DNA of 64,000 bases from Mytilus edulis (GCF_963676685.1 NC_092348.1:86118001-86182000), one strand, 5' to 3'. Shown: positions 5,753 to 52,113, counted from the first letter of the stretch. Program-made: numbers and translations. Notes: a model not told the origin generated them from the letters alone.

Positions 5753-7169
5753 AATATTCACTTATCTGTAAACTCCAATACGAATCAAACTGTAGACCAT
5801 GGACCTACATAATTGGGAACGATTCCTGCTGAGATAATGACATCAGTTGTGCTGCTGTGGCATCTCTAGTGGTCGATGTCATGAAAGAAGTTGGATTGAA
5901 ACTCAAATCTGTGTCTTGGATTGAAACTGAAATAATTAATCAAATTTTTCTAATTGTTAAAGGCCCATTGTTGCTATCTTATACACCATTTGGTTGGTGG
6001 TTGTCTCATTGGCAATTATGTCCCATCTTCATATGCATTTTTTTATAAAGGTAACATTGTAGATCGTTTACAAATTTTCCTTTTTTAAATCTTGATGTTG
6101 ACTAGATTATGACTTTTTTTAATTAACTTGTTTTTTATTCAAAATTTCGCAACAATTGCATCATTTGCTATGTCAAACACGTACGCAGTGTAGAGGACAA
6201 AGTCTTGTGAATAACAGGTTACCCTCAAAGTATGCGTACAATGCTCAATTTTAGTATAATCATACTGATTACAAACACAATACCATATATATGTCAGTAA
6301 AACTATTAAATCGAGAGGGCAACAGGTATATATATTGTTTCAGGACAGTGAAAATCAAGGTTAGTCAAAATTGTCAATTCATGATAGACGTAAAACGAAT
6401 TTTACCTTTGGCAAAACAACAAAGGGAAAACTTTACTTTCACCGATTTGATCTTTAAAGCCAATGATCCGATGAATAGTCGGACAATTACTAAACAAAAA
6501 CATGCAAAAAAATCATTCATAAAAAATAAATCTGATTAATAAATTCATACCATATAAGTAATATCTCCGTAAAATATGTTCTATCCGTCATCAGATAATC
6601 AGAAAGTGTCAAAAGGACACGCGACAAAAATATAAAAAGGTGTGTTTATTTTCATGGAACAAAAAATGTTTACACAACCGACAGACTTTAAACAATATAA
6701 ACAAATAATTAAGACGTTTCGATTTTCAAGCTGATTTACTTAATAAACCATTAGTAAGATCTTAGTTGATAGATATATGTTTTTAGACGTAAACGAAACC
6801 CAGTAGACGTCAAAATATGACAATACTTGACCAAGCAAATTATTTTGACCCTGTTTGTCAACACTCTATAAACCATAAGTATTTGTACTAAATATCTTAG
6901 TGTTTGTACTACTTTATTCTTAAAATGTCAGTGGCAGATCTCTAATATTAATAGTTTGATTTTTTTTTTATCTTAATGTGTATGGCAATACATACAGCCT
7001 CTTAATGGTCGCGACACACATTACTTAAATCTAACTGTTAACTGAGAAGAGATAACAAATAACAACCCCGCCTCATCCTTTCTCAACCCTAAAAAAAAAA
7101 TAACAACCCCGAACATATGAAATGATAAGGCATATCAACTTATAATTAAGAATATTAAAAGAAAAATAC

Positions 7170-7575
7170 TGTCTTCTGACATCAGACTCGGACTTCTCTT
7201 GAATTGAATTTTAAATGTACGTATTGTTATGCGTTTACTTATCTACATTGGCTAGAGGTATAGGGGGAGGGTTGAGATCTCATAAACATGTTTAACCCCG
7301 CCGCATTTTTGCGCCTGTCCCAAGTCAGGAGCCTCTGGTCTTTGTTAGTCTTGTATTATTTTAATTTTAGTTTCTTGTGTACAATTTGGAAATTAGTATG
7401 GCGTTCATTATCACTGAACTAGTATATATTTGTTTAGGGGCCAGCTGAAGGACGCCTCCGGGTGCGGGAATTTCTCGTTACATTGAAGACCTGTTGGTGA
7501 CCTTCTGCTGTTGTTTTTCTATGGTCGGGTTGTTGTTTCTTTGATACATTCCTGATTTCCATTCTCAATTTTATA
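7170..7575 (+). mobile_element. Non-coding interspersed repeat carrying the intact twister motif
   Basis: Its 3' part recurs inverted at ~51390-51620. Confidence 0.7.
7250..7340 (+). ncRNA. Type-P5 twister ribozyme motif, core intact
   Basis: GGCTAGAGGT(P5)-ATA-GGGG(P2')-GAGGG-[21 nt]-TAA-CCCC(P2)-GC-CGCATTTTTGCG(P3)-CCTG(P4)-TCCCAAGT-CAGG-A-GCCTCTGGTC(P5). Predicted cleavage U7293^A7294. Confidence 0.75.
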
Positions 7576-7744
7576 AAACAATCCAGGTGATAAGAAGGTC
7601 CTTTTAAATTATAAAAAAAGCTTTTGAAATACCAAAATGATAAGCTAGATACTGTTTTATTACCAAAAGAAAATAACAAAAAATATTGCTCACCGGATGT
7701 TTAAAAAAAAATGAATCGCAAATAATCTAAATAATGGATAATAC

Positions 7745-15378: not shown

Positions 15379-18099
15379 TTAGATACCAGAAATCTTATCT
15401 ATAGATTAGCCGATTGTGTCTTTTTCCGATTGAGACATTTTGTCCCGTCCCTCACTTGTCGTCTATTACTTCTTTATTGAGTTCTGAGATATGAACATCA
15501 ATTCTGCGTTTATTTAATTTGCTGAAATTTTAAATATTTTGGAAATTAAAGAGAAATTGTTTGTCAAAATATGAAACTGGTGAATAGTTCTGAAACCATG
15601 TCTCGATTTAGCTATTCTTGTGGTCCTTACTTGAGTACGTTGTTTTATTCAACACATTTTGTCCCAGCCTTCGGTTCCTTTTTGAATCTGTTCCTACATT
15701 TTTTTTAATTAACATTGTATTCATATTGTGTCATAGATTAAACTTATTCGTTCAGTTTATGTTAATTTGTTTTTGTTTACATGTCTTTCTGATCAAAATA
15801 AAACCATTTCAATTGATATTAAATGTTGTCTTGTTTATGTTGTAATGTTAATACACTGCTGTCTCAGGTTAGGGCACAGGTTTGCACTTGTTAAAGCGTT
15901 TAAACTTGCTGCATTGCTATGCACATGTCTTAAGTCAGGAGCCTGTTGTTTAGTGGTTGTCGTTTGTTGGTGTTGTGCACAAATGTTTTTTTATAATTTT
16001 ATATATATTTTTTATATAAACAAGACTGTTGGTTTTCCTGTTTCGAATGTTTTAGACAAGTCATTTTGGGTCCATTTATAGCTTTGTGTTCTACGTCAGC
16101 CAAGCCTCTATATTGATGGCTGTAGTTAGACTTAGAACTGTGAATTTTTAAATGGTGACTTAGTGAGTTGTCTCATTGGCACTCATACCCCATCCTTTTA
16201 TCTATATATTGTTTAACAAAAAATAGTTGTGTTTTGTAGATACACATTACTTGTTTTCGGGAATGAAAAATTTACTTTGTAGAAAATCGTCCCGATTCCG
16301 AAAATAGGATACAGGTACATCGAGGTTAATATCATCAAAATGCTGGACTTTTGATCGACAACATATTGGTGAACTAGTAGTCCCCGAGGTTATCACTTAC
16401 CTAGTTCATCAGTACTTCGTGAAACTACCGTTATTGCTGTTTTTAATTTCTGTCATGTTCCTCACGCATTGATCTGATTCCTTGTTTTATTTTGACTATT
16501 CTTGTTCTGTTGCTTAAACTATGTAAGTTTTTTCTTAGGTTTTGGATTTTAGAATAATTTGTCCATGAGCGTTAATTATCGAAAAACGCATACGGGAAAG
16601 TATAATTGGTACCGTTAATGTTATCATTTACCACTGGGTCGATCTGTTGGTGCAATGTAAACAATCCAAGTGTTTTACCAATGCAGTAGCTCAGAACTTT
16701 GATACTGGCATGCCATTATGGATATTGATTTGTAAAAAATTATCGAAATACCAATGTTACTATCTTTATGACGTTGTGATTAAATGTCTGGATTTGGCGA
16801 TTCTTTTTAGTTCTTTTAGTAATATCTGCTCTGCAGCGATTGAAAATTTGGTTTTTAATTTTCAACTATATTTGGTCTCGAGCTTTGTTAAAGATACTAG
16901 TACATTAATTGCAAATGTCAATCTGGTGCAATGAAATTGGATAATTTGATTACTACTATTATATCGCTTATTCGATACCCCTGCTGTTGGATTGTTATTC
17001 ATCGATAACAGGACCACTGCAGCAGAATGGTACTTTGGTACTTATATAGGAACATATACTATTGTTTTAAGTTGCAAATAAACGAAAATCATCTGCTTAG
17101 TCGTACAAGGATTTTTTGTAAAAAAAACAATATCACACAACTATTTGTTGACGCATTTTTGACAATGACTTTTATGTAAAAAATATAAACATTGAATATC
17201 TTCTCTTTCATATTTCGAACTTTATATGACATAAGTATAACAAAAATAACGACTATTAATTTCCACCAACGCAAATGTTGTGGCGACCTATTTGTAGAGT
17301 AGCTATGAGGCCTTTGATTCGACATTCATTAGAATTTAACAGCTAATTGCATTTGTGAAACTGAACAACTTTGATGTCAGGCAGTGCTTTTTATGCCTTT
17401 GGACATTAAATTTGAGATGTAGTTTTTTGTTGTTGTTTTAACCTTGTTTATTAACTTTCCAAAACAAATTAAGAATTTCAGCCTTATTGAACTTTTTGTA
17501 ATTAATTATTATATAAATGTCTTGTAACCAAAATACTGTAAAGTAAGAGGTTTACATATCCGTTAGCTAAACTTCCCACGATAGTGTAACTTCTGAAAGG
17601 TCAACTGCCTTTGTAATAGAAGACATGTCTCTGAGGAAAGAGAAACATAAACCAGTAACTAAATTAAGATAAAGACATGAAGTACAATTAACTAGGAAGA
17701 ATTTAACTATTTAACCTTTAACAGTTCGGAAGAAATAAAGGCTAAACTGAAGACGAAATCCGTCAAATTGACGAAACAATTAATTTCGGCCCACGGAAAC
17801 TGTAAGTCGTGCAGTCAATTAGCGAATATCATTGGTTTTAAATTGGTTTAGTAATATATGTCCAATTCAAATCAAGTTATCGTTGACCTTTACGAAGTCG
17901 TTCAGATGAATATCAAATCCACACCACATACATTGACTCAATACTTTGGAAACACTTAAATATAGGCTATGTCTGAACAGTCTGTGCAGGGTTTTATCTT
18001 TCAACGGAACTTTCATAAGAAATGATAAAAAATAGTGTTATCAAATATCAATAATACAGCTTAATGAGAGAAATTGTATCTACTATCAAATAGATGGCT

Positions 18100-20941: not shown

Positions 20942-21024
20942 TCAGGTTTCTGACTAAGGACAGGTGCAAACAAATGCAGCGGGTTTGAACGTATGAATAG
21001 GTACCAACCCTCACCCTTACCTGA
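20942..21024 (-). ncRNA. Type-P5 twister-like motif, slightly degenerate
   Basis: Minus strand TCAGG-TAA-GGGT-GAGGG...CAA-ACCC-GC-TGCATTTGTTTGCA-CCTG-TCCTTAGT-CAGA-AA-CCTGA; P2 covaries (GGGT/ACCC). Confidence 0.6.
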
Positions 21025-24000
21025 AATAATGGTGTAACATCGCAACATAGAAAGACACACTTTAAAAAAGATATCAATTGAAATGGCTGAACTCAACCAA
21101 AGGACATATTAACACTAACAAGTGAAACAGTTCGTGCTTTGTTTGTCAGATCTTGTAAGTCATACGTATTTTGAAGGAAAAAAATCATAGATTGTAACAC
21201 TTGAGAGTATTGTAATCATTTGTTTAACATTGTTTTAGATCAAATAACTCGTGTTTTTCTAACCATCAATTAAATTGTACATCTATTAATTAAGATATAA
21301 ACCATTTAAATGGGAAGGTAAAATTTTATTTTTTTACCACATTACCCATCTTAAAAGCATTTCATATGTTCTGTGTTGCCAATCTTTAATATGATATTTT
21401 CTTTGATCTAGTACAATATTCCTCCGGCCAATGCCAATTGACAAATGTCCAAATACCAAGGTTATTATCCTTTTCTTTCCAGATGTTACATGTCTAAATC
21501 TTTACTGCCCGAATGATTTGTGGTGTTGCACTAAGTCCTTTCCATGACAGGCCTACTAAATTAAGTCCTTACCGTCAATCTAGTACTATGTCATGTAAAC
21601 AATTAGTTACTATAGATATACTATAGATATACTGACATCTTAACGATTATTATGATAGTAAATTATTGCAATGTTATTGAGAGCTTATGAAATCTGCAGT
21701 AGATTGGTACACCTTTGCAAGTGCGACATGATTATTGACAGGTTTTTTGTATGAAAACAAATTAGAAGCTGACGGGTATCATTTGCAAGGGGAAAGTCGC
21801 GATGCATGTCTTGTCTTGTATGCACTGATTTTGAAAGTACAGGTAAATTAATTTAGTATCAAGTGTTCGTTTCAGAATAAAACTTAACAGTATGATGTAC
21901 TAATTAGTAATACAGCATACAGATGCAACAGTCATTAAAACATATCAAAGTTCAATGTATATACAAATAAAAAATACGTCAATTCCCAATGTGGAATTAA
22001 TTCCAATGTCCCCTACTTGAAGTATTGTATGTTACCCACATTTCATCTGGAACCATCGTCTCTCATTTGAAAAACTGACCTCAGTTATTTATTGTTTATT
22101 GTGTAAAACGTACAGGAGATTGGTAAATAAAGGCAACAGTAGTATACCGCTGTTCGAGATTCATAAATCTAAAGAGAAAAACAAATCCGAGTTACAAGCT
22201 AAAACTGAGGGAAACGCATCAAATATAAGAGAAATACGACACAACAGAAACACAACATTAAAATGCAACACACAAAGAAACGAACATTAATATAACAATG
22301 ACCATTTCCCTGACTTAGTACAGGGCATTTTAAGATAAAATGGTGGATTAACCTGGTTTTATGGCATGCCAAACCTCCCGCTTCGATGGCAATGTTAATT
22401 ATAACATTAAAATGAAAATATTTCATGACAGGACTACAACAATACAAATAGATGGGAGAAAATATAGGACAGAGAAACAAACGATTAATAGCCAACAACA
22501 GGTACCTGGTTAAAAATTTAATACGCCAGACGCGCACCACGTCCACGCAAGACCTACCAGCGACGCCCAGATGAAAAAAGTTTGAAAGCAAAAACACGTA
22601 CAAAGCTGAATAGTACTGAGGACCAAAATTTTCAAAAAAGTTGTGACCAAAACGGCCAGGAATATCCTTATTATTTAGAATAATACATACTTTTGCAAAC
22701 AGTAAATTTTATAAAATTACTATTAAATAGACAAACAGGATTAAACTGAAGTGGTGACTAGCTACAGAAGAAAAACGGATAAATTGCAAAAATCACAGCC
22801 TTGTTAGCCATAACCAGTATTACGCTCGAAATGACGTCAGCAAGAAATATTTACTGTTTGGCACTTAGCAAACATCGATAGATACAGCAAAGAAAAAAAA
22901 GCACTAATTTTTAAAAACTCATCTGTAACAACAGATGCTCTAAAATATTTCAGAATGATTGCCATACCAGGATGTTTTTTTGTTGATTTATTTTATTTTA
23001 AATATAGTTATAACGTTTTTATGTATAAAAATACTTTAATAAAAAAAATGCAGACTTTAAGATTAGAAGGCACAATGATTACTAAAATACTACAAACAAA
23101 ATAAAATTGATTATTCGTACTATAATAGCCGAAGTAATAACGTGACATAAGATGAGACTATGGCGATAAACTATTAGTGAATAAGAAAAGAATGGTAATT
23201 GTATATGTTTCATATTTTTGTCGGCAGAAAATACATTGCTGAAAGATCATGTGTAAATTCAAAAGAAATCGTGATGCTATGTCAATATGTTTACGACTTA
23301 AATATAAAAACGGATATAGATTTCATGTTTTATGTTGTCCTTATTTGTTGACCATGTTGAGACATTTTTTATCTATAAAAATCTCTCTTTAATGCAATTT
23401 TATGTCAGAACCCTGTAATTCAGTGGCTGTCGTTTGTTGCTGTATATTTATTTTTCGCTTATTGTTTTGTATATAAATCATACCGTAGGTGTTAACATTT
23501 GAATTGTTCTACGTTTGTCATATCCGGACTATTACAGCTTTACTCCTTGTTCAAGGTCGCAATGAGTACAACAGTTACTTACTTCGTCTTGATTTGGTCA
23601 CTGGTTGAATGTTGTCTCATGTGCAATGCTATTACATGTTCTGATTTTAACATAGTAACTTATCCGATGAGAGAGCCCTACTCGGTCACACAAGTCAAGT
23701 AGTTAAACGTAGGATGACAGAATATTGCATCATACAATGCATGTCATCACATTCAACTGGATATATTACTGATAAAGTGACGTTATAGGGTTGCAGATAT
23801 CAACTATAAATGACGAAAGAAAACTACTATCAATATAATAGAATTTTATTGTACTGTCATACTAGTGTGAGGTAGCTATACAATCCACGAAGTCAGGAAT
23901 ATGAAAGTTGTTGTCCATTAGTTTGATGTGTTCGAGATTTTGATTTTGCCATTTGATTAGGGACGACATTCAGTTTTGAATTTTACTTGGGGTTTAATAT

Positions 24001-24152
24001 TTTTGTTATTTTACTTTCAGCATTGACTCGAAGCTTAACTAGTAAAATGTATAAGGAATATACATATGTGGATTAAGAACATGTCTGTTAAAACATATGT
24101 ATTATGACTTAATGATAAAAGGTTTCATGCACCAAAACCTGAGTTATTTTAT

Positions 24153-25470
24153 CATCTATTTTATCAGCAATCAAAGACGGGCTTCAAAGTTATTGTGAAA
24201 CTGCCTATTCTAGAGGTGGCGTGAATCAGATGTGGATACTTAAAAATTCAAAAGATCTTTTAGAGTACATACAATCTAACTCTCTTTCATCTTGTAACAG
24301 TATTAAAACATTTGACTTTTCTACTCTGTACACAAGTATTCCACATTCCAAACTAAAAGACAAATTGAAAGAGTTGGTATTACTTTGCTTCATAAAAAAG
24401 AATGGCCAACATAGATACAAGTATCTTGTCTTAGGGAGGGATAAATCCTACTTTGTAAAGAATCACTCTGATTCAAACAAAAAATTCTCTGAAACTGATA
24501 TTATCAAGATGCTTGATTTCTTGATTGACAACGTATTTGTTACGTTCGGAGGACGTGTTTTTCAACAGACTGTCGGCATTCCAATGGGAACAAACTGTGC
24601 CCCTCTACTCGCAGACTTGTTTCTTTATTATTATGAGGCTGACTTCATGCAGGAACTTCTTAGGAAGAAAGATAAGAAGTTAGAAATATCCTTTAACTCT
24701 ACTTTCCGCTATATAGATGATGTTCTTTCATTAAACAATTCAAAATTTGGTGACTATGTGGAACGCATCTATCCAATCGAACTAGAGATAAAGGATACTA
24801 CAGATACAGTTAAGTCGGCTTCATATCTTGACTTACATCTAGAAATTGACAATGAGGGTCGGTTGAAAACAAAACTTTACGACAAAAGAGATGATTTCAG
24901 CTTTCCAATTGTGAACTTCCCATTTCTAAGTAGCAACATTCCAGCAGCACCTGCATACGGGGTATATATCTCCCAATTGATACGATATTCCCGTGCTTGC
25001 ATTTCCTATCATGGTTTGCTGCTCACAAGGAAGCTATTAAACCAAGAGTTCCAAATGGTGAAGTTGAAATCATCCTTTCGTAAATTTTACGGACGCCATC
25101 ACGAGTTGGTTGACCGTTATGGAATAACCGTATCACAAATGATATTGGATATGTTCCTTACATCGTAACTACAATCCCCTTCCCTTTCATGAATATGACC
25201 TACCGAATTAGGCTATTTGCCGGATTTGTAATCACATAAGCAACACGACGGGTGCCACATGTGGAGCAGGATCTGCTTACCCTTCCGGAGCACCTGAGAT
25301 CACCCCTAGTTTTTTGGTGGGGTTCGTGTTGTTTATTCTTTAGTTTTCTATGTTGTGTCGTGTGTATTATTGTTTTTCTGTTTGTCTTTTTCATTTTTAG
25401 CCATGGCGTTGTAGGTTTGTTTTAGATTAATGAGTTTGACTGTCCCTTTGGTATCTTTCGTCCCTCTTTT
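24153..25470 (+). mobile_element. Penelope-like retroelement, 5'-truncated: RT/thumb ORF (24221-25168) plus 3' UTR
   Basis: DFSTLYTSIPH, GIPMGTNCAPLLADLFL, FRYIDDVL, YLDLHL, LYDKRDDF. The ORF stops without a GIY-YIG domain. It has a 15-nt in-frame deletion (DFLDR) relative to the 12.3-12.8 kb copy. Confidence 0.9.
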
Positions 25471-32980: not shown

Positions 32981-35900
32981 TGTCGTTGATGAAAGGTTAT
33001 TTGGTATGCAGCACGGTTTAGTTTTTCGTTTGAACAGCTGCAAAAGTATAATTTGACATTTTGTATGAAGAAAAAAAAAAGAAAAAACACATGCGTATGA
33101 TGATGCTAAATGTCTTTTAAAGTGCAAAAGTTCAAAATTACCAATAAAAGAAATGCTATGACTCAAGTTTCTCTAAAGTACAACTATTTTTTCGTTAATA
33201 ACATCTATTTCTAATAACTATGGATAAATAAATTAGTGTTTTATAGTTGATTTAATATGTATGTATATATGAATTATTAAATTGTACTTTTCACGCATTT
33301 ATACAATATCACTTGTGTGTTATTTTCTAAGAAAATTAGAACAGATGGCACAATGTGGAACGTTATGTTTTTTGTTAAAATTCAATATTCTGTGGTCATG
33401 AGCTCAAATAACTTAGTTCCGTTTATCCATGTTTTACTTCATTACAAACTACTTAATTTGTATTTCGTCTCCGTTTCTCTGATATTGAATATAAGCGTGT
33501 TAATCCTGTTTGGAGACATGTTTTATAAATATTTCTAAGGCAAGGAAAAACCCATATTTTTGTTTAAGAAACAAATGGATCAAGCGCAATTTTTGCAACT
33601 TAGCGTCATCTCTAATGCATACCTAGATATAAACATGAATAAACAGCACCTGTTACCATCATTAACACATTACTTTTTAATTCTATGATATAAAGATACA
33701 TGACAAAACAATTGAATACTCGAATCAAAGAAATTTATCAAGTCATTATAACGAACCGAGTGCGTATGATTTCAGAAAAAGAAACCGAGCTGCGTTTTAT
33801 ACAAATGTGTTTTGTGTTTTGGCAAATCATGTCTCTGTTTTGTTTTTGATACAAAATACACAAATGTGTATAGTTTTGTAGTTTTCTGATGGGATGCATA
33901 TTAGGTTCTAAATCCTTATCAAGGATTTGAAAGATTAAACTAAATTTTATTGTAAGTATTTATGTTATAACTTGGTACAGAACATTTTAAGAATAAAATA
34001 GTAGATTGAACCCGGTTTTTATGACTAGCCAAACCTCTAACTTATATGGCAATTTTGAAAATATCGCTAAAAAGTTAACATGGTATGCGGGAGAATAAAT
34101 AAAACCAACAATAAATACATTTTACAGTCATCAAGAAAATGATCGATGCAATATGTAGTGGCATTTTTTTCTCAGTTCTAAATCTAAATATTTGAATGTA
34201 GAATGGTGAACGATTTATGGCTGATATATGCAAAGTAAGATACACTTAACTTGGTGACGCATTCCCCAGTCAGGTTTCTTTCCGAGTTAATGTGATATAT
34301 TTGGATGTGTTAACTAATGTGCTTTGTCGTTATTATGTTTCATTGACACATATATGACGTATATGTATTTTTGCTAATATGCTTGGTCTATATGCCATTT
34401 TGTGCTTCTTTGTTACATATTTGTTTGTTCTTATAGTTATTCAGACCATTAAAAGAGGGTAGTTTACCTAACATGATAATTACTTCACAGTTCAGCTAGC
34501 AAGCAAGCTAACACAAGACATTACCTATGCCTACAAACTCAATGAAATCGGCTGTAAAGAAAACGTAAGACATGTATCTCTTAGGTAAATGTAACTTTGT
34601 ATACCTTCATCATTACTTAATATTGTATACTTGTAAAAGCAGTTATGTTAGTACTTCTGTCTGTCTATTCAGCTATATATAATGAAGATTGTAAGGTTTT
34701 TGTTTCTTTTTGTAGGGGGTGTGAAGATTGATAAAATGAAAAACTAACTATGAGGTATTACTTACTGTATCATTCCTAGCAATTGCACTATCTACGTAAA
34801 TTTCTATGGTGTAAAATATCTATTACATAAATCTTTCTGACAAGTGATTAAAATGATTTTAAACTTTGACATAATGTTTCTATAGTCATTCAATTCAGTG
34901 AAAATCAGAATTTTCATATTTCTTATTTTTGACATTTCGAAAAATACATTTTTAACCAACATTAATATTGCCAAATTTGTGAAACTTAACGTCATGTATG
35001 TATTTGTTTCATATTAAATCTATGATCCTGATTTATAGTTTCTTAATCAAATTTTGTAAAATTACAACAAGCAATTGACTTATCTCAGACTTTTGAGTAT
35101 TGTACTTTACATTGTTTTTTCTCGTTGTTCAAATAGTAATATATGATATTTTCCAACAATATATACCAAAAAGATACCAAAGCAACATTCAAGCTGATAA
35201 GTCGAAAACTAACTGAAAACATCATGGCTACATATGTATGTTGGTGTTTTTGTAGCAGTTCAGTGCTTCTGTTGTTCCGTTATTTACTCTTATAGTTGAT
35301 GTGTTCTGTTTTGGTTTATGACCCACGTTTTTTTTTCGTTTAGTCGATTTATGACTATTGAACAGAAGTATACTCCTGTTGCCTGTATTGTATAAATTAG
35401 TCACTCAGTTGTTTTATACATCTTGGTTTCCTTTTTATTTTAAGTTGAAGCTTCACTGGAGGAAAATCCAAAAAAAAAACGACATACCAAATGCTTTAAT
35501 GACGGTGCTTTAATTGGTATTGAAAGAAGTAAAAGGAGATGTGGAATATTTTGTTTAGTGTTTAATGAATTCTATTTTTTTTTTACATGTGAAGGACATG
35601 TTTGATATAAGTGTGAGTGCTGCATAAATTATTTTCGTATATGGAAACACAGTATTAACTTCAAAGGGTGCAAAACCGGGTGATATATTTGCACGGCATG
35701 CGAATCAACACTCAGTCAATATTCCATTAATGGAAATAGAAAAAAATGTATGTAGACGAACTGCGCGTCTGACGTTTTAATATATAAGCATGGTTTCTTT
35801 GACGAGTCCTTTTATATAATAATGGAATAATGGAATGCATATATTTGATTGGATTGAAATAGTACTTTACTCCATGATTCATATGTAATGATTATACAAA

Positions 35901-36113: not shown

Positions 36114-36213
36114 ACTGTTATATTCCTGACTTGGTAGAGGCATTTTCTTATGTAAAAAATGGTGGATAAGACATGGTTTTATAACTATCTTAACCTATCG
36201 CTTGTATGGCAGT
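36114..36213 (-). ncRNA. Type-P5 twister-like motif, degenerate (ACC/GGT family)
   Basis: P5 ACTGCCATA/TATAACAGT, loop TACCAAGT, T2 AC/GT. Related copies at 22301-22390(-), 49053-49153(+), 33965-34051(-). Confidence 0.5.
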
Positions 36214-48100: not shown

Positions 48101-49313
48101 TTACCCTATTTTCCTAAGGCGTCATTCATAAAACAATAATTGCAGTCTTGTTACATGTGTAAATAAAGCGTCAGAAAAGAAACTCCCATCTAAAACGATA
48201 CAAAAACTATTCCCAAGTGCAGGTCTTGAATGGAAACTACTCTATTCATTTGTATTATCTGTAGTTGACATTTAGATAAAGACTTAATTTCGCTTCTCAG
48301 TGTGCGATACTAGTAACGTCTCGCATAGCGTCTGAACATAAACCATTGTTGGTTTGGGTTCATAAAGTAAACGAGGTTTCTTAATTCGTAATGGATAAGA
48401 TATAATTCATATGGTTTGTATTTGTTTTAAAAGCATTTAAAAAAGTAAACAAGCAGTTAATTATTTTAATCGCATACATTATTTTCATATTTAAACAGAC
48501 ATATATGAACATACCATATTTCTTGTGGTATTTTGCTGTCTTGTACTGAATAAAGAACCGTCCAGCGTGAAATATAACATTTCTATAAATTAACAAGAGA
48601 TATCTATAGAAAGTGTTTTTGAGTTTAAATTCGCATAATTAATGCATTATCGAATTCGAATGTTGGTACTTCAATATCTAAGTGATGGAATAAATATTAA
48701 ATATATAATCATGAATAATTATTTCTTTTAACATTTACGGATCATTTTGCATTGTAAAAGTTAACTTGTGTCCAAAGAATTTCGGGAAAAGGAAAGAAAA
48801 AAACAAAGATATTGTACTTCATTAACCACTTTGTTTTCTTTTCCTGCATACCTTCATTGCCCTCAATTTAAGTTGACGGCATTGATGATTTTATGTAAAC
48901 GGCAATAAACAAATCTAGAAACGCTCTGATTTCGCAGCTTTTGAAATATCATCATTTTACCATACCTCGAACCACAAATCGTAAACCTTTAGTTTGTATG
49001 AAATTTTAACTCCATATATATGGAATTTCACAATTTGTGATATACATGTAGTACTGTAATACAAGAGAGAGGTATAACTACCTCTAACTCCAGGTTTAAT
49101 CAACCATTTTTTACATAAGAAAAATGTATGTACAAAGTCAGAAAAATGACAGTTGTTGTCCATTCGTTTAATGTGTTTGAGCTTTTGAGTTTGCCATTTG
49201 CTTAGAAACTTTCCGTTTAGAATTTTCCTCGGAGTTCGGTACTTTTGTGATTTCACTTTTTGCATATAATGGTACCACCAATGTCGGAGAAGATAAAAAA
49301 AACTTTTGAACTG

Positions 49314-50599: not shown

Positions 50600-50970
50600 A
50601 TGTAGGAAGATGTGGTGTGAGTGCCAATGAGACAACTCTCCATACAAATAACAATTTAAAAAGTAAACCATTATAGGTTAAAGTACGGCCTTCAACACGG
50701 AGCCTTGGCTCACACCGAACAACAAGCTATAAAGGGCCCCAAAATTACTAGTGTAAAACAATTCAAACGGGAAAACCAACGGTCTAATCTATATAAACAA
50801 AACGAGAAACGAGAAACACGTATATATTACATAAACAAACGACAACTACTGTACATCAGATTCCTGACTTAGGACAGGTGCAAACATTTGCAGCGGGATT
50901 AAACGTTTTAATGGATCCAAACCTTCTACTTTTTTCTGAAACAATAGAATAACATCACAACAAAGAAAAA
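50600..50970 (-). mobile_element. Non-coding interspersed repeat (twister-bearing family ending GTCTCATTGGCA..CACATCTT)
   Basis: Homologous copies or fragments at 20705-21100(-), 15760-16210(+), 30285-30535(+), 26050-26235(+), 23410-23645(+), 1445-1620(-). Confidence 0.75.
50856..50939 (-). ncRNA. Type-P5 twister-like motif (P2' mutated)
   Basis: Minus strand TCAGA-AAAA-AGTA-GAAGG...TAA-TCCC-GC-TGCAAATGTTTGCA-CCTG-TCCTAAGT-CAGG-AA-TCTGA; T1 covaries (CCT/AGG). Confidence 0.6.
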
Positions 50971-52113
50971 CATAAGTCCGAATCTGTGACGCGTATGACA
51001 CCGTAATTGTTTTTGATTTACAAGGACTTTTCGATTTCCGGTACAGAAAAATACAACTTTTTTCGATGTTTCTTTTTATTATTTTTCACATTTAAACACT
51101 CGTAAAGTGTTATTGAATCATTTCTATGCGGTTCCTTCAGCAACTTGATGCTGGTAAACGATTTCCTCATGAAAATGATACGAAAAGAAATCGCATGATA
51201 CGATAAAAAGGTAACGAGGCTCGAGAAACGTTCATGTTTTCAACAAGTTGAAGTTACAAACAAGTTTTTCTTAATTTCTACTATTACAGTTATTTAAAGT
51301 TTAAATAAATGTTTTTTTATTATGATATTAGTAATAGAAGACAGTTAAACCGTAATCAAGATATTTTAATTCAGTAATAATTTGAGACGTTAATAAAATT
51401 GAGAATGAAAATGGGGAATGTGTCAAAGAGACAATAACCTGATCTAATAGCAGACAACAGTCCAAGGTTACCAATGGATCTTCAATGCAGGGGAAAACTC
51501 CCGCACCCGGTTTGCTTTCGCTGGCCCCTTAACATAATAACAACAAGGTATACTATTTCAGTGATAATCATTGATAATGGACATCACACTAAAATCAGAA
51601 GTATACACAAGAAATTAAAATCCTAAAAAATGTACATAACAATTATGAAAAATAAATATGATATACAGCAACAATCACCACATTAGTGGGTCCTCACTAT
51701 GGACAGGTACATACAGTGTGGCGGCTCAAACGTCTTAACTGGCATAAAACTCTACCCTAACATGGGACAGTGTATGTGCATAATCTCAAACATTAAATCT
51801 TTATTAATATAAATTGGAAATAACTTTTGAAAATGGTAGGATTGCATAGCGTAAACATTACTGTACAAGCATTATTTGATACTTCAGAAATAGCTGAGAA
51901 CAATACCTGAGATAGATATTTTCACTAATTCTTTACACCATTCATCTGAACTTGGCCAAGTTTGCCTTTGGGTTTTTGATTAACTGCCTATAGCACCCTT
52001 GGTGCTTTGATTAAATTGTATTTAACCTCTATTTATCATTATTATTGAATATGTATTGTTCATTTTTAATATAATTATTATTGTATTAAGAGAGCATTAT
52101 TGAAAATTGGTGT

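Follow-up and report, generated by a model that had tools for sequence, protein, structure and literature searches.

Does a stretch of 91 bases in the genome of the mussel Mytilus edulis encode a self-cleaving RNA? The stretch lies at positions 7250–7340 of the 64,000-nucleotide segment of DNA that we analyzed (GCF_963676685.1, NC_092348.1:86118001-86182000; hereafter the window). An original prediction, made from the letters alone, had read it as a circularly permuted (type-P5) twister ribozyme inside a non-coding interspersed repeat. We concluded that these bases probably encode a twister-class RNA in type-P5 topology, that palindromes take the place of its stem P1, and that it sits in the 3′ untranslated region (UTR) of a Naiad Penelope-like retrotransposon. 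Below we present the comparative evidence for the fold, identify the host element, and then weigh the case for cleavage.

Elements of the twister core

The letters given for 7250–7340 in the original prediction were exact as written, and all of the twister core elements were present in P5-permuted order (Table 1). A descriptor of the core, GAGGG..TAA-NNNN-GC..GTCCCAAG with spacers, matched once in the window and in none of 100 dinucleotide shuffles. Two pseudoknots complete the arrangement: T1 pairs GGG (7269–7271) with CCC (7319–7321) of loop L4, and T2 pairs GC (7300–7301) with GU (7324–7325) of the same loop. G7267 stands at the position of the twister catalytic guanine. The P5 duplex of the window was calculated at −20.4 kcal/mol, versus −8.2 on average when its 5′ strand is matched with 3′ flanks taken from other families, and 97% of family reads have C at position 7339, which gives a G-C pair in P5.

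The core was also compared with the published table for Schistosoma mansoni twisters, which runs P1, UAA, P2, GC, P3, P4, GUCCCAAGC, P4′, GUAAA, P2′, GAGGG, UUGG (PMC8501958). It matched segment by segment, the UU after GAGGG included, except that the mussel sequence is permuted through P5, carries U in place of the loop's last C, and lacks P1.

Conservation of the fold across copies and lineages

We searched 1.37 Gb of genome. A 111-base query returned at least 996 candidate matches, and the 40 that were scored were 98–100% identical. Following a profile search, we built a covariance model (R1) from the nested helices only, leaving T1 and T2 out of the model. R1 found 45 modules in 292 kb; 29 of the 45 lay in 264 kb that had not been selected for the repeat, or about one per 9 kb. 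The modules fall in at least four families with different flanks.

T1 and T2 were then added as pseudoknots to the genome alignment of 45 copies (36 distinct rows). Results showed that 76.2% of the cells were paired, versus 35–40% when the 3′ partner was slid by 1–3 columns. The covariation score was 0.275 (0.05–0.10 when slid), a value reached by 0 of 500 shuffles, and all P2, T1 and P3 pairs had changed on both sides. Because the pseudoknots were absent from the search model, their covariation constitutes a fair test.

An independent set consisted of 80 metagenome contigs fetched by reverse transcriptase (RT) protein alone, at 35–96% identity. The R1 module was present in 13 of the 80, on the coding strand in all 13 and downstream of the RT match in 12; the RTs of these contigs were 40–96% identical, some only 40–57%. 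One contig (L065:416–501) has a complete module upstream of the RT on the coding strand, extending 5′ of the predicted cleavage site, which fits a pseudo-long terminal repeat (pLTR) in a partial tandem of Penelope-like elements. In this set 84.3% of the cells were paired versus 33–37% in the slid controls, and the covariation score was 0.444 versus 0.03–0.08, again with 0 of 500 shuffles reaching it. P4 covaries here as well (CG/AU; UA/CG/GC). A strict hand-made descriptor run on the 80 metagenome loci recovered six true modules with about one false match per shuffled set, and was not used for prevalence.

The pairing partners vary widely across lineages. T1 occurs as CCC:GGG, CCU:AGG, ACC:GGU, UCU:AGA and CGA:UCG, with all three pairs changing on both sides in two data sets, and T2 as GC:GU, AC:GU, CC:GG and GC:GC, with 96–100% of its cells paired and first-position pair types GU, AU, CG and GC. 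P2 is found as CCCC/GGGG, UCCC/GGGA, ACCC/GGGU and CACA/UGUG, and the 3′ strand of L1 as GAGGG, GAAGG, GAGGU, GAAGA and GAUCG. Every lineage has a P5 of its own, unrelated in sequence to the others; it has 7–17 pairs and a self-duplex energy of −10 to −27 kcal/mol, versus cross-lineage means of −3 to −13. Invariant in intact copies are GA in L1, AA after the predicted site, AAG in L4, and the A before P2′. In families C2, D and E the MAFFT and covariance-model alignments place P2′/L1 one base out of register, and because of this the counts made on alignments A3 and A5 understate P2 and T1 pairing; P2′/L1 was re-anchored by a rule blind to the T1 letters.

The minimum free energy fold of the window copy (z = −3.0) pairs GGGUU with AACCC instead of forming P2 and T1. 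This helix was rejected as its pairing is not kept in families B and D.

We concluded that the twister-type fold comprising P2, P3, P4, P5, T1 and T2 is very probably under selection in many Naiad lineages. As read from the aligned copies, the letters that act in twister catalysis stand at their expected places and do not vary in intact copies. Covariation in every helix and in the two pseudoknots thus upheld the fold and element order of a type-P5 twister; a P1 that closes internally is missing. A chance resemblance in an ordinary repeat, seemingly common through copy number, would agree with the lack of a significant covariance-model match (see below) and with a motif first matched by eye. 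It is contradicted by the shuffles, by compensatory changes in every helix and both pseudoknots, the independent metagenome set included, and by the conserved strand and position relative to the RT open reading frame (ORF), and we regard it as extremely improbable.

The host is very probably a Naiad retrotransposon

The module of the window lies in a 5′-truncated family A copy (Table 1). Family A copies have a common 3′ end (...CCATTCTCAATTTTA) and scattered 5′ ends, the mark of target-primed reverse transcription. Both boundaries were confirmed by RNA reads, in that reads from other copies continue upstream at 7172 and diverge after 7573–7575. Young copies occur at about 6 per 200 kb. Within a 3′ UTR of about 640 nt, about 320 nt separate the module from the stop codon and about 280 nt from the 3′ end.

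The repeat had been described as non-coding and as a non-autonomous retroelement, which was not supported: longer copies extend upstream to include an open frame in which the RT motifs FDFSTLYTTLPH, GIPMGTNCAPLIADLFLY and RYLDDIL occur. For the same reason we dropped the candidates tRNA-derived short interspersed element (SINE) and core-domain SINE. The clearest view of the coding part comes from metagenome contig L051, whose RT is 96% identical to that of family A. Upstream of the RT it has a KR-rich block (...RKNRSHGRRKNRNQRK...), SCNCS (CxC), GPKY and VPADKAANN (DKA), and P0003 and P0005 also have GPKY and DKA motifs. Farther upstream motifs of L051 include a GIY-YIG-like one, IIYLLT[TGA]..GIQYVGETGRYLSKRTQEH, also upstream of the RT; the Pfam GIY-YIG match, from a search with the piece after the last TGA, was weak (14 bits, E = 0.065). 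These features agree with the Naiad diagnostics of Craig et al. (2021), namely DKG changed to DKA, CxC, GxKF/Y and a KR-rich block upstream of the RT, and the same authors reported an N-terminal GIY-YIG, heavy 5′ truncation, very high bivalve copy number and, in some Naiads, selenoprotein coding.

Selenocysteine coding is suggested for L051 too. Its frame has in-frame TGA codons at 194–196, 287–289, 320–322 and 1595–1597, where relatives have Cys; three of them fall within the zinc-finger/GIY-YIG region, the fourth after the DKA motif, and the frame ends with TAA. A SECIS-like (selenocysteine insertion sequence) structure lies just after the stop at L051:3095–3159 (30.9 bits; gathering score 35), and such matches, of 27–31 bits, occurred just after the stop in six contigs (L051, L052, L060, L061, L067, L068). 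By these motifs the L051-type family A element is a selenoprotein-coding Naiad, like published clam and spider members.

Pfam recognised no RT family in the open frames, and the single match, to RVT_1, was weak and came from a distant homologue; the host was therefore identified by its motifs and the literature. Rfam detected no canonical hammerhead in the window or in the metagenome tails. Taken on its motifs, the host is very probably the tail of a Naiad, a Penelope-like element that is autonomous and encodes selenocysteine.

Sequencing runs labelled with three different organisms also contained near-identical copies of the 404-bp tail, and this points to a young family common to closely related species.

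Palindromes occupy the place of P1

Pairing of P1 between the bases after GAGGG and those before U^AA is possible in no lineage, and the claim that two palindromes stand in its stead was borne out in the window and across lineages. Palindrome 1 was found in 15 lineages as a perfect palindrome of 6–10 nt with no spacer, beginning 1–2 bases after the 3′ strand of L1. Its sequence differs per lineage (GGGAUCCC, GGUACC, GGCAUGCC, AGCUAGCU, GGGGCCCC, UGUGCGCACA and others). Palindrome 2, likewise found in 15 lineages, has 8–11 nt with 0–1 central base and ends at or beside the predicted U(−1); other lineages have AACCGGUU, AAACCGGUUU, AAGUCaGACUU, AACGaCGUU and AACUAGUU. In 11 of the 15 lineages no more than 1% of shuffles attained this self-complementarity.

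A spacer-less palindrome makes a poor hairpin and a good intermolecular duplex. The arrangement recalls, as a close parallel, the dimer-dependent hammerheads of other Penelope-like elements, and by that analogy the activity of the Naiad RNA would probably depend on palindrome pairing between two copies. That the Naiad twister is an obligate dimer ribozyme, its palindromes pairing between two RNAs or two tandem tails, we consider possible on the same analogy, though on balance unlikely. In such a dimer the side-by-side palindrome helices would hold both L1 strands, as P1 normally does, and cleavage would occur only in tandem or crowded transcripts. The P5-permuted unit-length product would carry half a ribozyme at each end, and these halves could re-associate through P5, P2 and T1, favouring religation to a circle.

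The palindromes might instead be signals at the level of DNA or complementary DNA (cDNA), such as a target of the GIY-YIG endonuclease or a snap-back primer from which the second strand is synthesised, rather than RNA dimerisation elements that replace P1. Spacer-less palindromes are equally palindromic in DNA, what is kept is the palindromic character and not the sequence, and these data do not tell RNA from DNA. Against this stand the location of both palindromes, exactly between the L1 strands and hence in the place of P1 in every lineage, and the precedent within the same superfamily, which is an RNA dimer. We judged a role in DNA or cDNA to be rather unlikely.

The case for and against cleavage

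If the module acts as a twister, its RNA would undergo the usual twister reaction at the bond joining U7293 to A7294, cleaving itself with G7267 as base and A7294 as acid, and would yield a 2′,3′-cyclic phosphate and a 5′-OH. A twister would then do the job of the hammerhead in Penelope-like tails, that is, the processing of read-through or tandem transcripts. We think real self-cleavage somewhat more likely than not. Several observations weigh against it. A P1 stem of at least two pairs beside the cleavage site was found in no lineage, and cleavage without P1 has been reported as inefficient (PMC8501958). Cleavage of the P5 type splits the motif, so that the cleaved RNA alone cannot pass on a whole ribozyme. 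In families D and E, P2 is weak, with only 2–3 pairs and an uncertain register, and is poorly explained.

No significant match to an Rfam twister model was obtained in the window, the genome or the metagenome tails. At gathering thresholds the window gave 0 Rfam matches and so did not reach the thresholds of RF02684, RF03160 or RF02681. A permissive scan of 7150–7450 gave only a local twister-P1 match over P3/P4, with 13.3 bits and E = 5.9, against a twister-P1 gathering score of 67.2 bits; this local alignment puts P3 at 7302–7313 and aligns L4 to GUCCCAAG. RF02684 run against the whole genome produced no match at E ≤ 10, with 79 of 31,236 candidates scored, and the related metagenome tails had no Rfam twister match. 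The original prediction had named the lack of a significant twister covariance-model hit as the first half of what would refute it, and this formally counts against it. Judging from the model lengths and the alignment returned, no Rfam twister model appears to combine P5 closure, P3 and an absent P1. Because no Rfam model would fit a P5-closed, P3-bearing, P1-less molecule, the failure is not decisive, and we consider it outweighed by the comparative evidence.

The raw reads of one 2026 RNA run (X24) were aligned to window positions 7150–7600. They covered both orientations at a depth of 350–1100, and most crossed 7293/7294. No position, 7293/7294 included, was flagged as one where many molecules start or end, so that this run showed no flagged pile-up of the ends anticipated at A7294. 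In the first-mate-minus class, which is sense in most stranded libraries, depth was 422 (7252), 364 (7283), 526 (7303), 539 (7306) and 655 (7339), while the other read class was flat over the same positions (647–697). This strand-specific step speaks in favour of cleavage and lies within 20 nt of the predicted bond, but it is resolved only to 20 nt and no more than suggestive, since transcription might just as well begin here in the tail. The raw run yielded no report of back-joined reads, for which it was not examined in depth. The first-mate-plus class showed extra depth over 7214–7293 and 7438–7575, for which antisense transcripts from particular loci are one possibility.

The genomic 5′ ends likewise gave little sign of the site. 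One of about 20 random family A copies starts there. Among independent truncations adjacent to (TA)n, about 4 of about 15 within a 30-nt range were at the site, versus about 2 expected. Only two tail-to-module junctions were found genome-wide in the 30-nt range, one of them at the predicted site. In addition, at L028:1783–1887 a family B module starts ..TT|AACACCGCC, within 2 bases of the site, directly after a family A 3′ end. A template jump that set out from a cleaved RNA's 5′ end would leave a junction of this kind. The genomic 5′-end cases are ambiguous by 1–3 bases because the flank ends in T. Cleavage, if it occurs, does not define the ends of most insertions. The view that the element is ribozyme-processed consequently gained no backing from Rfam significance or flagged RNA ends, and from genomic 5′ ends at most a weak enrichment.

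A separate observation concerns 11 dispersed loci with one and the same 54-mer, where (TA)n-TTTTAATTTT runs directly into AACCCCGCC..., beginning at the base after the predicted site (G000:C5:57315937, C6:51505935, C13:3109758, C13:3385747, C13:62735325 and six small contigs). The shared 54-mer might represent a secondary repeat, or else a segment that was duplicated and whose module starts at the site.

These results could also be read to mean that a twister-like or twister-derived fold is kept for a non-catalytic job in the 3′ UTR, with cleavage absent or incidental. The job could be that of an RT handle for target-primed reverse transcription, or of an element for RNA dimerisation and packaging. 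The module does stand at a fixed 3′ UTR place in every lineage, and short 5′-truncated copies retain it; the missing P1 and Rfam match, the reads across the predicted site and the lack of concentrated genomic ends all agree with such a role, and the palindromes suggest dimerisation in their own right. However, a protein handle need not keep GA, AA, AAG and both pseudoknots across RTs that are only 40% identical. Moreover, the hammerheads of other Penelope-like elements are ribozymes even though they, too, are poor cleavers in vitro and genomic ends bear no trace of them. We therefore give the non-catalytic role a minor, doubtful share of the probability, and retain self-cleavage by a P5-closed twister as the preferred interpretation.

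Features of the window

Besides the module at 7250–7340, R1 detected further modules of other families on both strands of the window, several of them decayed (Table 1).

Table 1. Features of the window: the twister-type module and its elements, the host copy, and other modules (score column remarks give R1 bits)
Feature	Position	Strand	Remark
Twister-type module, whole (91 bases)	7250–7340	+	letters as read directly
P5 5′ strand, closing helix, GGCTAGAGGT (RNA GGCUAGAGGU)	7250–7259	+	pairs with 7331–7340
AUA (DNA ATA), 3′ strand of internal loop L2	7260–7262	+	A beside P2′ identical in all lineages
P2′ GGGG	7263–7266	+	partner 7296–7299; four P2 pairs change on both sides (A3)
GAGGG, 3′ strand of L1	7267–7271	+	GA constant in intact copies; last three letters covary with L4
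Palindrome 1 TGAGATCTCA (RNA UGAGAUCUCA), replaces P1 3′ strand	7273–7282	+	perfect, spacer-less
Palindrome 2 AAACATGTTT (RNA AAACAUGUUU)	7284–7293	+	last base U7293, 5′ of predicted scissile bond
L1 5′ strand U^AA	7293–7295	+	predicted cleavage U7293/A7294, placed by position relative to P2
P2 CCCC	7296–7299	+	partner P2′ 7263–7266
L2 5′ strand GC, one T2 strand	7300–7301	+	partner G7324-U7325
P3 hairpin CGCA-UUUU-UGCG, 4 bp	7302–7313	+	four pairs change on both sides
P4 CCUG/CAGG (DNA CCTG/CAGG), loop L4 TCCCAAGT (RNA UCCCAAGU)	7314–7329	+	Rfam local alignment, covariation
A7330, then P5 3′ strand GCCTCTGGTC (RNA GCCUCUGGUC)	7330–7340	+	partner 7250–7259
Family A Naiad 3′ UTR copy, 5′-truncated, 404 bp	7172–7575	+	extent of similarity to 29 other copies
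Decayed module, family B	15867–15941	+	R1 56.6 bits
Module, family C2, P2 ACCC/GGGU	20947–21021	-	R1 65.9 bits
Module, family D1; T1 ACU:GGU in copy, ACC:GGU in family; T2 AC:GU	22307–22386	-	R1 59.5 bits
Decayed module, family D	33964–34046	-	R1 41.4 bits
Module, family D2	36123–36206	-	R1 59.7 bits
Decayed module, family D	49060–49144	+	R1 42.2 bits
Module, family C1, T1 CCU:AGG	50861–50934	-	R1 71.0 bits
Decayed module, family B	51690–51762	-	R1 49.9 bits

A 341-aa open frame at 24143–25165 (+) gave a below-cut-off RVT_1 match (27.1 bits, E = 4e-6); it is a remnant of another retroelement and does not lie beside a twister module. Frames in the flanks of other loci (L039:1211–3196 (-), L030:1752–2885 (+) and L018:2142–2765 (-)) included RING/B-box (TRIM-like), SCAN-domain and GINS Sld5/PSF1-like frames.

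Relation to known systems

The closest known RNA is twister type P5 (RF02684; Roth et al. 2014, as summarised in PMC8501958 and PMC6765202). With it the mussel module shares P2, P4, the optional P3 and P5, T1 and T2, U^AA, GAGGG, the L4 letters UCCCAAG, and termini in P5. It differs in being without a P1 hairpin, with two palindromes instead; in having P3 together with a long P5 (7–17 bp); in a T2 of G.U/C-G; in scoring far under the Rfam thresholds; and in its host, an animal Penelope-like element.

Retrotransposon-borne twisters have been described before. T-variant twisters are found at the 5′ end of S. mansoni Perere-3 (RTE) non-LTR retrotransposons (Liu et al. 2021, PMC8501958), and truncated twisters at RTE 5′ ends receive a brief mention in PMC7761336. 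Like the Perere-3 twisters, the mussel module is carried by a retrotransposon, has a defective or absent P1, and has nearly identical core letters, GAGGG-UU and GUCCCAAG included. The Perere-3 twisters, however, are of type P1 and lie at the 5′ end, so that after cleavage the ribozyme remains part of the element, and the cleavage site borders directly on target-site duplications. In contrast, the mussel module is of type P5, belongs to another class of retroelement and is located inside the 3′ UTR, about 280 nt short of the 3′ end; genomic ends do not mark its predicted site.

In the pLTR hammerheads of Penelope-like elements stem III is short and its loop palindromic, and these ribozymes are proposed to act as dimers, helped by the tandem layout of the elements (Cervera & de la Pena 2014; Lunse et al. 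2017; reviewed in PMC6765202). The mussel module resembles them in host superfamily, in its tail or pLTR location, in the palindrome that replaces the helix 5′ of the site, and in partial tandems. It differs in ribozyme class and in having two palindromes rather than one, and dimer activity is ascribed to it by analogy only. Animal non-LTR retrozymes (Cervera & de la Pena 2020, PMC7229834; bioRxiv 10.64898/2026.07.22.740005) are similar in that they bear a ribozyme, are linked to Penelope-like elements, are abundant in mussels and may form circular RNA. Whereas retrozymes are short tandem hammerhead units, the mussel copies are dispersed, 5′-truncated tails of a coding element with a twister.

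The original prediction gave such a ribozyme as not known to be described for these bivalve repeats, and this stood: in the literature searched, no paper linked twister with Naiad or bivalve repeats, and papers combining twister with Mytilus or molluscs mentioned twister only in passing. The twister class itself is known; as judged from sequence comparison, what is new here is a P1-less, P5-closed, palindrome-bearing twister fold in Naiad tails.

Implications

Naiads are the most abundant transposons of bivalve genomes (Craig et al. 2021). If the interpretation is correct, it would add some 10^5 twister-type motifs, to the order of magnitude, per mussel genome, all missed by current Rfam models. 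A natural twister with palindromes for P1 would also make dimer-dependent catalysis directly testable on a 110-nt transcript, and if the dimer is real, the design of the dimeric hammerhead would have evolved a second time with an unrelated ribozyme class. Craig et al. (2021) found Naiads to be without hammerheads and suggested that Penelope-like elements may be able to do without the ribozyme, or that it may even parasitise them. If our interpretation holds, a conserved twister fold in the corresponding position would point the other way: Penelope-like elements would in general require a ribozyme in the tail, and two unrelated classes of catalytic RNA would supply it.

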